The position numbers were made by a program, and so were the translations under genes. Under the pieces are notes generated by a model. It worked only from the letters and a program-made list of their open reading frames with translations, made no database searches and was not told the DNA's origin. DNA of 63,167 nucleotides, the filler included, from Polymyxa betae A26-41 (taxonomy: Eukaryota; Protista; Endomyxa: Phytomyxea): assembly GCA_003693705.1 (NCBI GenBank). It is 7 parts of 7 records of this genome, joined end to end, with 100 filler letters (N's around TTAATTAATTAA, not from the genome) between each part and the next. Parts side by side here need not be neighbours in the genome. Positions count along the whole stretch, not along the records: positions 49,535 to 59,768 come from RBZT01000010.1; 6 more parts are not named here. One strand, 5' to 3'. Of the stretch, positions 55,507 through 58,303 are shown one piece after another; the first letter of the stretch is position 1; every line of letters begins with the position of its first letter.

Positions 55507-57070
55507 TTATAAAAAAATATTTTTGTTTAAAAAAGGCCGATCCACGAAAATCAGGCATTTTGTGACTGTCTGATCCATCATCGAGTCATAATCTCCAAGA
55601 ATGAGGATTAATCCAAACCCTAACCCTAGCAAGCCAAAGGCTTCAAATACAATAATGACGCCAACAAAACACAGAAAATGTGTATCTCGTTTATTTAATA
55701 CAACGGGCGGCGACTCCGGCATCACAAGAGTCGCTTGCGTCACGCCTGTCTCTAAATCATTAGATTTCGGTTCCAGAATCGGGTCTGCAGGACGTTCTTC
55801 CGGCGGCGGGACCTCTTCCCTCACGCTTTGACGGCATCCGGTGCGATTCCGATGAAACGTCATCCCCCATTTATCATTCCGCACGAGCTGACCGCAATCG
55901 CAGGCGAACGCCCCGATCGAGAGCGCCTCCAACAACGTCCATCGATGTCCGGAATGTTCCGTCCGCCCATGATGATAGATGTTGCTCTCAATCTGCCCGC
56001 AGATCGGGCATCGTTCGCGAACCGGGGCGGACGACGTCGCGATGTCCGAAAGCCCTTGCGTACAGCCGGTATGCGAGCGATGCATGCGGACGCCGTACGT
56101 CGCGTTCCGGACTAAGGTCCCACAGGCGCACGCGTAAAACCCTAACGACGTGGCCTCCTCCAGTGTCCAGAAATAGCCCGGATGCACCATCTTCACATGC
56201 TGATAAACATCCGAGGTTCGATTCTTACAGCAGACCGGACAAAGTCCGAACTTGGACTCGTCGGCGTTGCGGACGCGCTTCGTCGGTCGCGTCTCATCCG
56301 CGAACGGATGACATCGCGGTCCGGATTGATGCCGAGCGAGACAGTTGCCCGCGTTGCGGACCAGTACGCCGCAATGGCACGCGTACCCGCCGATGGATTT
56401 CGCCTCGTCCAACGTCCAGTGATGCTGCGTGTGTCGGGTCTTGGCGTGGTAATAAACATCGGCTTGAGAAAGGCCGCAGATCGGGCAGGGGTCGGCGTCG
56501 GCGTCGCCCTGCAGGGGTTTCGCACGTTGAGGGAGGCCGCGCTGCGCCTCGATATAGACCGAATAGCCTTCTCGACATCCGGAATTGTTATAATGCCCAG
56601 CCAGGCCGTGCGTCTCGTTTCTCACCAACGTCCCGCAGGCGCAGGCGAAGGCGCCGATCGATCGAGCTGCATCCAACGTCCAGCGATGATCAGCATGATG
56701 GCGCTTCGCATGCATGAACAGGTCGGGCTGGGCGGTGTCGCAGACAGGGCAGCGATCGCCGCCGTTCGGCAGGCCGAAAACGCAGCCGGCTTTCGAGCGA
56801 TGTTTCGGGATGCCATTGGTGGCGTTTCGGACCAGCGTCCCGCAGCCGCAGGCGAAGGCGCCGATAGATTTCGCTTCGTCCAGCGTCCAGCGATGGCGGG
56901 TGTGGCGCTGCTTGGCGTGCTTATAGACGTCGGGTTTGACTTTACCGCAAACAGGGCAGTCGCCGGCCGGGGGCGCGGCCGGCGCTGGCTTCGCCGCTTC
57001 AGGCCGCATCAACGAAGACGATGGACGAGCCGGGCCGCGGGAACTCAGGCAGTCGACGACGCCGACGATC
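55507..57070 (-). CDS. Protein with five tandem double-zinc-finger modules
   Basis: Five copies of C-x2-C-x9/10-H-x4-H-x4-WTL.EA.S[IL]G.[FY]AC-x-CG.LVRN-x7-H-x5-C. The frame stays open upstream to a TAG acceptor-like site at about 57070. The true ends are uncertain. Confidence 0.85.
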
Positions 57071-57643
57071 TATCTATCTAATAAAGACGAGATAAGCCAA
57101 GAGACGAAAAAACTGCGCGACTCCCCAAGAACGTGCGCGAGTACAGAAATATCTTAAACGATTTTTATTGATGGCTGCGCAGCAAGAAAACATTTTTCGT
57201 CAGTTATTTGTGTGATGTTCTGATAGGGAGCAAGAGGCCGCTCGGCGCCAATTCTGTACAAATCCTGTCTTCATCTTTTTCTCGAAAACTCTAAACCCTT
57301 CAGAACTTTCCGCCAGCAATGATTACTGGCTTTATCAAGGGACGGATCGAGACGCTGCTCAGATCGCCCCTTGCTACGTGTATGACCCCTCGCACAAATA
57401 ATCCACCATAGCTTCTCCAGTCTGCCTAACATCAGCAGCTTTCCAAGGCCCGAAAACATGATCACAGAACCACAAGACCGAAGGCCGATCGTTACCAATC
57501 CTCAAGAGCCAAGGGGTCACCCTCGCTCTAAAAACTGCGTCAGTCAGTCTTGAATATGATTTAAGATAAGTCGCTGACGCACTTATTTGTGCGAGGGGGG
57601 TCGCGCACATAGCAGGATCTAAAACTCAGATTTCGCAATAGCA

Positions 57644-58303
57644 ATGCCATCTGAGAAATCCATGCGGATGCGGAAACCCGAGTCCGTCCAGGCGTCCGGC
57701 GGTTGTCGCTCCTCACCGGCTCGGCGATCTACAGCAGGCTCCGGCTCGGGCGGTGGCCTCTGCCCCATCTGTCACGTGGCTCACAGGAACCTGTTCCGCC
57801 ACGCGCGCCACCACCATCTGGACCATTATTGGACAGCCGCCGAGGCCGCCGCCGTCGGAGGCCAGGCCTGCTCGACCTGCGGCGCTCTCGTCCATATCGC
57901 CGCCAACGCCCTCAACCAGCATCTCCTGCATTCGCACCGCTACATCGCCGTCCCTGCTGCCAATTCCGAACCGCGGGCCGGTACGGCCCAGGCTCCGATC
58001 GACCTGGTCGACGATGACGACTGTTGTTCGCCGCCGGTGATACCATCGACGATTTCGGTGACCGTCGTACTGGCCAGTTCGTTGTGCGTCCGCGTCAGCG
58101 TTCGTCGTCAACACACTGTGCGTCTATTGTTGGCGATCGTGGAAGATCAGGAAGGCGTGACGCTCGATTGTCGATCGTTCCATATTCTGTTCAACGGGGA
58201 GCGTGTTGCGGCGAATGAAAGGCTCTCGAAGATAGGCGTCGAAGACGGAGACCTGATCTCGTTGATGCCGTCGTCTTTCGTGCCCTTTCTAACGAGTACA
58301 TAA
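57644..58303 (+). CDS. Double-zinc-finger module, SIM-like motif and SUMO/ubiquitin-like domain protein
   Basis: CPICH..LFRHARHHH..HYWT..EA..VGGQACSTCGALV..H; PIDLVDDDD; ILFNGERV...LSKIGVEDGDLI. No C-terminal GG. Confidence 0.8.
   Translation: MPSEKSMRMRKPESVQASGGCRSSPARRSTAGSGSGGGLCPICHVAHRNLFRHARHHHLDHYWTAAEAAAVGGQACSTCGALVHIAANALNQHLLHSHRYIAVPAANSEPRAGTAQAPIDLVDDDDCCSPPVIPSTISVTVVLASSLCVRVSVRRQHTVRLLLAIVEDQEGVTLDCRSFHILFNGERVAANERLSKIGVEDGDLISLMPSSFVPFLTST

Follow-up and report, generated by a model that had tools for sequence, protein, structure and literature searches.

Two divergent Polymyxa betae genes share a two-zinc module with the N-termini of non-LTR retrotransposons, in one of them joined to a SUMO-like domain

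Introduction

The window analysed here is a stretch of 63,167 nucleotides (filler included) from Polymyxa betae A26-41, in which two genes lie head to head at positions 55507-58303; the analysis covered the ~10-kb piece that holds them (49535-59768). We found that both genes encode a two-zinc module of ~60 amino acids (aa), whose homologues include the zinc-finger domain at the N-terminus of certain retrotransposons lacking long terminal repeats (non-LTR retrotransposons). The first gene, open reading frame A (ORF A), encodes five copies of this module, and the second, ORF B, a single copy followed by a SUMO-like domain. A previous reading of the bare sequence (the sequence-only reading) had described this layout and had taken the module for an unrecognised one. 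The architecture is real, but the kind of protein to which the module belongs, the N-terminus of a retrotransposon, is known. With a probability of about one half, we consider the pair to be genes derived from a transposable element, i.e., exapted, in which ORF A would encode a multivalent DNA binder and ORF B a one-module SUMO-like adaptor.

The module has neither a Pfam model nor a solved structure, yet it heads widespread site-specific, partly telomere-seeking non-LTR retrotransposons in fungi and protists. Its definition would improve the annotation of such elements and offer a handle on their target choice. If the two genes are functional, a retrotransposon target-recognition domain would have been reused by the host, both as a repeat array and as a SUMO-like fusion, and SUMO signalling would be linked in a new way to telomere biology or to how transposable elements are controlled. 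If they are relics only, the module family is documented all the same.

Results

Six copies of a two-zinc module in two head-to-head genes

The frame of ORF A extends over 55507-57012 on the minus strand, with the first ATG at 57009 (coding region 55507..57009) and the stop codon at 55507-55509; residues are numbered from a TTG at 57012. ORF B (57644..58303, plus strand) encodes 219 aa. As previously described, the genes are divergent, and their start codons are separated by 631 bp (57013..57643), a region that we presume to be a shared promoter. The alignment placed the five modules of ORF A, all on the minus strand, at aa 19-77 (56782..56958), 88-146 (56575..56751), 176-234 (56311..56487), 258-317 (56062..56241; one residue longer than the others) and 335-393 (55834..56010), and the module of ORF B at aa 40-98 (57761..57937, plus strand), which bears out the five-to-one layout.

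In an alignment of the six copies, 16 columns do not vary, all putative zinc ligands being among them, and identity is 34-56% to copy 1 and 34-59% across copies. The module carries eight zinc ligands in the order C-x2-C-x9-H-x4-H, then a W-T..E-A...G linker and C-x-C-G-x12-H-x5-C. The sequence-only reading had described a C2H2 finger followed by a CxC-type finger. The CxC-type second finger stands for the module as such, but the second half of the ORF B copy departs from it (CxxC...H..H(.H)), and the first finger is shorter than a classical C2H2 finger (C-x2-4-C-x12-H-x3-5-H). An AlphaFold2 (AF2) model based on a 55-row alignment reached a predicted local distance difference test score (pLDDT) of 92-95 over aa 40-100 of ORF B and showed two beta-beta-alpha fingers with a short helix between them. 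Pfam contains no model for the module, with PF25420 and similar entries matching at chance level only, and a PDB sequence search returned no solved structure that matches the whole module. Sub-threshold matches to individual fingers were obtained for zf-Di19 (25.1 bits versus a cut-off of 27.5), zf-C2H2_4 (E above 0.003 in relatives) and the ZFAT fingers (E 0.03).

Synonymous differences between the modules are near saturation (pS 0.62-0.78), the ratio of non-synonymous to synonymous change (dN/dS) is low (0.15-0.43), different codons occur across the six copies at 13 of the 16 invariant positions, and the GC content of third codon positions (GC3) is coding-like in the modules and the greater part of ORF B. 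These observations speak for long-term selection on the proteins rather than for recent dead fragments. The modules are old paralogues that diverged under purifying selection. GC3 amounts to 0.60-0.87 over the ORF A modules and to 0.53-0.83 in ORF B up to aa 210, with a decrease to 0.40 in the final ten codons.

The module is found at the N-terminus of non-LTR retrotransposons

A profile of the six module copies was scored against 1.84 billion representative proteins with a cut-off of E ≤ 1e-3. This search identified 55 matches, the best of which, P0001, had an E value of 3e-21, so that the module, which had been taken for unrecognised, does have relatives. In 17 of the 55, the module, usually located at the extreme N-terminus, is followed by a region homologous to the part of P0001 that comprises a reverse transcriptase (RT) and a restriction-like endonuclease (RLE). 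These RT-bearing relatives are ~1000 aa long and consist of the N-terminal module, the RT and a C-terminal CCHC motif with the endonuclease. Pfam RVT_1 was detected in 7 of 8 relatives tested, and the solved reverse transcriptases nearest to their RT are R2 proteins. At the C-terminus, the motifs CCHC, RH(E/N), E, RxD, D and K-x2-KY are conserved in 10 aligned relatives, and their order and spacing agree with the consensus published for the restriction-enzyme-like (REL) endonuclease of CRE/SLACS/MoTeR elements (PMC12857005); by this comparison they are a predicted zinc knuckle and a predicted PD-(D/E)xK restriction-like endonuclease. Because the relatives carry an RT that is R2-like, together with the CCHC and endonuclease motifs, the module is, judged by homology, the zinc-finger domain with which the proteins of some non-LTR retrotransposons with a restriction-like endonuclease begin.

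We calculated a tree of 55 modules over 65 columns, which has no reliable root. All six modules of ORF A and ORF B fall into one clade (SH-aLRT, the Shimodaira-Hasegawa-like approximate likelihood ratio test, 96) together with the RT-borne modules of P0001, P0003, P0005, P0012, P0014, P0015, P0017 and P0036, and apart from the arrays of proteins that lack an RT. The homology of the two genes to element N-terminal zinc fingers is thus seen both in the profile scores, with E values down to 3e-21, and in the tree. A region of P0005 was considered as a cysteine protease and was rejected for lack of Pfam support.

Tandem modules also occur within an element. In Kwoniella dejecticola (CP144539.1, locus L004, 10001-14596), four or more tandem modules and a full RT-RLE region follow each other in one stretch. 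The sequence-only reading had held that a match to a characterised family of unrelated function would speak against it, and such a match was found in part, since the family is that of retrotransposon N-termini and arrays of the module exist inside such an element as well. At the same Kwoniella locus, which is interstitial between housekeeping genes, the annotated 920-aa 'uncharacterized protein' and the next called gene are a single retrotransposon ORF.

Other relatives have no RT. P0007/P0056 (L001, 2231-5125) and P0011 (L002, 803-3670) contain 4-7 modules, and P0007 and P0011 begin with a SIM-like (SUMO-interacting motif-like) V-I-N-L-[VM]-D followed by an acidic/Ser tract, which may be taken as an independent hint that ties the module family to SUMO binding. 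P0007 lies in a host-like context, adjoining a gene for a transporter of the major facilitator superfamily (MFS). In P0013 and P0025 (~760-820 aa), P0021, P0035 and P0038, the module is located at the start or the end of a protein with neither an RT nor any Pfam domain, so that the family includes additional architectures that are uncharacterised.

Two elements from the clade of the six modules adjoin telomere-type repeats. The P0017 element (L005) has (CCCTAAA)n on both sides (1-51 and 3060-3085), and in L003, (CCCTAAAAA)3 follows the P0001 element (3255-3290), which suggests insertion into telomere repeats that differ in type between the two. MoTeR, FoTeR and Cnl1 are known as telomere-associated members of the CRE/SLACS group (PMC12857005), and the N-terminal zinc fingers of R2 confer recognition of its DNA target (PMC11204384). 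A PDB sequence search gave no sequence match between these R2 fingers and the module.

The two genes are not plain copies of an element

Searches with tblastn, using all 56 retrieved proteins including the RT-bearing ones, detected no similarity to RT or endonuclease outside the modules in 49535-59768, and Pfam found no RVT_1 in ORF A or ORF B. The C-terminal CCHC and PD-(D/E)xK endonuclease of the relatives is likewise absent from this piece. An intact or 3′-complete retroelement was therefore ruled out. The sequence-only reading had also named the location of both ORFs inside one element bounded by terminal inverted repeats (TIRs) or long terminal repeats (LTRs) as a possible objection. A repeat search around the pair found no LTR or TIR bracketing it, and a single element of this kind was dismissed as well. 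Because the piece lacks RT-like matches and the pair is not surrounded by LTRs or TIRs, the two genes are not plain copies of an element.

ORF B combines the module with a SUMO-like domain

Behind its module, ORF B encodes the acidic stretch PIDLVDDDD (aa 118-126; 57995..58021, plus strand), which is SIM-like by sequence pattern only, and a SUMO-like beta-grasp domain of the Rad60-SLD type (aa 137-208 of 219; 58052..58267, plus strand). The Pfam profile Rad60-SLD matches once in ORF B, with 23.5 bits for the whole protein, just below the cut-off of 23.8, and with 26.1 bits (E 7.5e-6; profile positions 1-71 of 72) when aa 121-219 are used alone. In a PDB sequence search, about 30 top matches were NIP45 SLD2, SUMO1/2, Smt3 and one unnamed protein, with ubiquitin next; these matches are individually weak (E 0.02 or more), the best being NIP45 SLD2 and SUMO1. 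The alignments with them place the SUMO-type signature F-x-G-x-R ... G-[MV]-E-[DE]-x-D-[LV]-I in the ORF B domain. On the Pfam and PDB evidence we accept a SUMO-like domain in ORF B, its fold being unconfirmed. No Gly-Gly is present at the C-terminus, in agreement with the earlier description of a SUMO-like domain without di-glycine.

The searches revealed the module and a SUMO-like domain together in no further protein, and no relative or fetched locus contains a SUMO-like domain, so that the fusion appears to be unique among the data available. A feature search of a protein atlas with ORF B returned weak unrelated rows only.

ORF A carries a basic stretch and an open tail

Between modules 3 and 4, ORF A encodes the basic stretch RPTKRVR (aa 242-248; 56269..56289, minus strand), which resembles a nuclear localization signal (NLS) and may mediate nuclear import. 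Both this stretch and the PIDLVDDDD of ORF B had been pointed out before and are borne out. An additional feature is the tail of ORF A past module 5 (55510-55833, minus strand), which is open for 109 codons, whereas the other two frames contain 10 and 6 stops; the frame was kept open in only 13 of 20000 shuffles. The tail includes a hydrophobic stretch of 28 aa (55594..55677, minus strand; Kyte-Doolittle 19-residue maximum 2.5) that is encoded in part by a telomere-like GGGTTAGGGTTTGG string. Because GC3 of the tail is ~0.45, lower than over the modules, its coding status is uncertain, and it may be either a membrane anchor or a read-through of noncoding DNA.

Downstream of ORF A, pairs of telomere-like (TTTAGGG/CCCTAAA-like) motifs are located at 54757-54770, ~54203-54216 and 53510-53523, the last within an intron of a kinase gene. 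A search for a two-unit telomere-type pattern with ≤2 mismatches yielded 2 matches, compared with 0.04 expected. A 16-bp minisatellite, the unit of which has a CCCTAAA core, extends over 54392-54580, ~1 kb downstream of ORF A, and flanks an N-run assembly gap (54473-54525). Telomere-like motifs and the minisatellite at the gap are thus found on the downstream side of ORF A, at a distance of 0.7-1.1 kb; they are suggestive of past telomere-related sequence, of which they are no proof.

Discussion

In the explanation that we favour, the pair was derived from a transposable element, with a transfer that would have run from element to host. The five modules and the NLS-like stretch of ORF A would allow multivalent binding of tandemly repeated DNA, and our best guess for its target is that of the parental element, a telomere-type TTTAGGG-like repeat. 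Sharing the module type, ORF B would be brought to the sites of ORF A, where its SIM-like motif and its one non-conjugatable SUMO-like domain could form an interface to proteins of the SUMO pathway. The 631-bp upstream region common to both genes would permit their co-expression.

Several observations weigh against this explanation. The branching inside the clade that holds the six modules is not resolved, so that the elements may instead have taken up a module of the host. Telomere flanks were seen in only 2 of the 5 relatives with readable flanks, and the Kwoniella copy is interstitial. Structure prediction, which had been proposed as a check, served the module well (pLDDT 92-95) but gave no confident fold for the SUMO-like domain: the pLDDT was 35-73 with an alignment, in which strands and helix followed the order strand-strand-helix-strand-strand, and 43.5 for the domain alone in single-sequence mode. 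When the ORF B model was used as the query in fold comparisons (Foldseek against PDB, a wider set and the Atlas), the results were uninformative, only the module being well modelled. In the F-x-G motif, ORF B has Asn where SUMO1 has Glu and NIP45 has Asp; in Rad60 and SUMO, this position matters for binding to the backside of Ubc9. Finally, full-length searches, exact look-ups and metagenome scans revealed no orthologs of ORF A or ORF B and no orthologous pair.

Known systems resemble the pair in part. The first are non-LTR retrotransposons with a restriction-like endonuclease (CRE/SLACS/CZAR, MoTeR/FoTeR and Cnl1, and more distantly R2 and Utopia/NeSL): the module is homologous to the N-terminal domain of element proteins with an RT and CCHC-RLE, which we set beside CRE/SLACS/MoTeR by architecture and motifs. 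Tandem modules occur in one of these relatives, and some of them are located in telomere repeats, as is known for MoTeR/FoTeR/Cnl1. In contrast to them, the two Polymyxa genes have no RT or endonuclease, one being a pure five-module array and the other a fusion with a SUMO-like domain. The comparison with the RENi family (Rad60/Esc2/NIP45), which the sequence-only reading had drawn, holds only loosely. It applies to the SUMO-like domain, which lacks Gly-Gly, follows a SIM-like motif and has Rad60-SLD and NIP45 SLD2 as its best matches. It does not extend to the rest, as ORF B has a single such domain instead of a tandem pair, carries a zinc-finger module, comprises only 219 aa and is similar in sequence to these proteins in the beta-grasp domain alone. 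KRAB-ZNF, ZAD-ZNF and ZNF451 proteins, the latter with tandem SIMs and C2H2 arrays, likewise couple finger arrays to the SUMO pathway or to co-repressors, with transposable-element control as a possible role. In contrast to the 28-aa C2H2 finger of KRAB-ZNF and ZAD-ZNF proteins, the unit here has 60 aa and two zinc sites, and the effector is encoded by a separate neighbouring gene; KRAB, ZAD and SCAN domains were not detected in ORF A or ORF B (Pfam, E ≤ 1). Domesticated DNA-binding domains of transposons, such as CENP-B/Abp1 from pogo and the THAP proteins, are similar in that the DNA-binding part was kept without the catalytic part under purifying selection, whereas the source in the present case would be the N-terminus of a non-LTR retrotransposon. 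Such an N-terminus is not known to have been domesticated, and a literature search found no described case.

The earlier idea of transposon control survives as an alternative that we judge unlikely, now with a defined origin of the module. Here, the pair would act in defence against transposable elements: the borrowed module would recognise the target site of the retrotransposon or the element's own DNA and block or silence the element, with ORF A competing for the target in the manner of a truncated, DNA-binding-only repressor and ORF B recruiting SUMO-dependent silencing, in functional analogy to KRAB-ZNF/TRIM28. The common ancestry of the module with element N-termini would fit such a role, as would the SUMO-like domain with its SIM-like motif, the purifying selection on the modules and the association of a SIM-like motif with module arrays in other non-RT proteins. 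However, Pfam revealed neither KRAB or ZAD nor a comparable repressor domain, and with dN/dS below 0.45 there is no sign of the rapid positive selection that is typical of arms-race zinc fingers.

A view that appears to us quite improbable is that the two ORFs are remains of other mobile DNA or of the 5′ regions of retrotransposons and are in decay, having no host function and frames that are open by chance or youth. The module is typical of retrotransposon N-termini, arrays of it are known inside an element, the telomere-like motifs and the minisatellite at the assembly gap are close to ORF A, GC3 falls in the tail of ORF A, and the full-length searches found no orthologs, all of which would fit relics. 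Yet all zinc ligands are retained in six copies that are 34-59% identical, at saturated synonymous sites and low dN/dS, and the ORF A tail is open against expectation. No remnant of an RT or RLE was detected in the piece, and a SUMO-like domain was found in no element relative. Truncation of non-LTR retrotransposon copies usually affects the 5′ end and not the 3′ end.

Of similarly low probability is the view that the module is an old host zinc-finger domain for DNA or RNA binding that was captured by retrotransposons, in which case the genes would encode ordinary factors of transcription or chromatin, specific to the lineage and unconnected with transposons and telomeres. It could draw on the absence of a reliable root of the tree, on non-RT proteins in host-like contexts, such as P0007 beside the MFS transporter gene, and on P0013, P0021 and P0025, which are devoid of an RT. 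Against it, the modules of the pair cluster with RT-borne modules whose source organisms differ widely in composition, and not with the non-RT arrays, and their closest relative, P0001, is an element that adjoins telomere-like repeats.

We regard as very unlikely a more specific form of the exaptation that we favour, in which ORF A would be a telomere-repeat binder anchored in the nuclear envelope or another membrane and ORF B its SUMO-like partner, both together forming a telomere-tethering, capping or anti-retrotransposon system built from the domain by which a telomere-seeking retrotransposon recognises its target. If the telomere and SUMO assignments are true, the pair would be the first documented domestication of the N-terminal domain of a non-LTR retrotransposon, and one coupled to the SUMO pathway.

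Neighbouring genes

Long antisense ORFs over ORF A (e.g., 56182-57081, plus strand) were dismissed as by-products of the high GC content, and an Rfam scan of the piece gave no match. Further from the pair, a 486-aa ORF (50626-52086, minus strand) has a GC3 of mostly 0.7-1.0 and is overlapped by long ORFs on the opposite strand. Neither a Pfam match nor, in a full-length search, a homolog was obtained for it; a letter-for-letter identical entry with a poor model is present in the ESM Atlas. Either the ORF is an orphan gene, or it is an artefact that arose from the GC-rich sequence.

The neighbour closer to ORF A is a multi-exon protein kinase gene of the tyrosine kinase-like (TKL) or Tyr-like type (52561-53949, minus strand) with short GT-AG introns, one of which is very T-rich. 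An ORF with a signal-peptide-like N-terminus lies in a different frame at this locus, and the gene model is ambiguous. Because exons in the piece are GC-rich (0.6-0.65) and spacers AT-rich, and because the kinase gene has short GT-AG introns, the piece looks like eukaryotic-type DNA.

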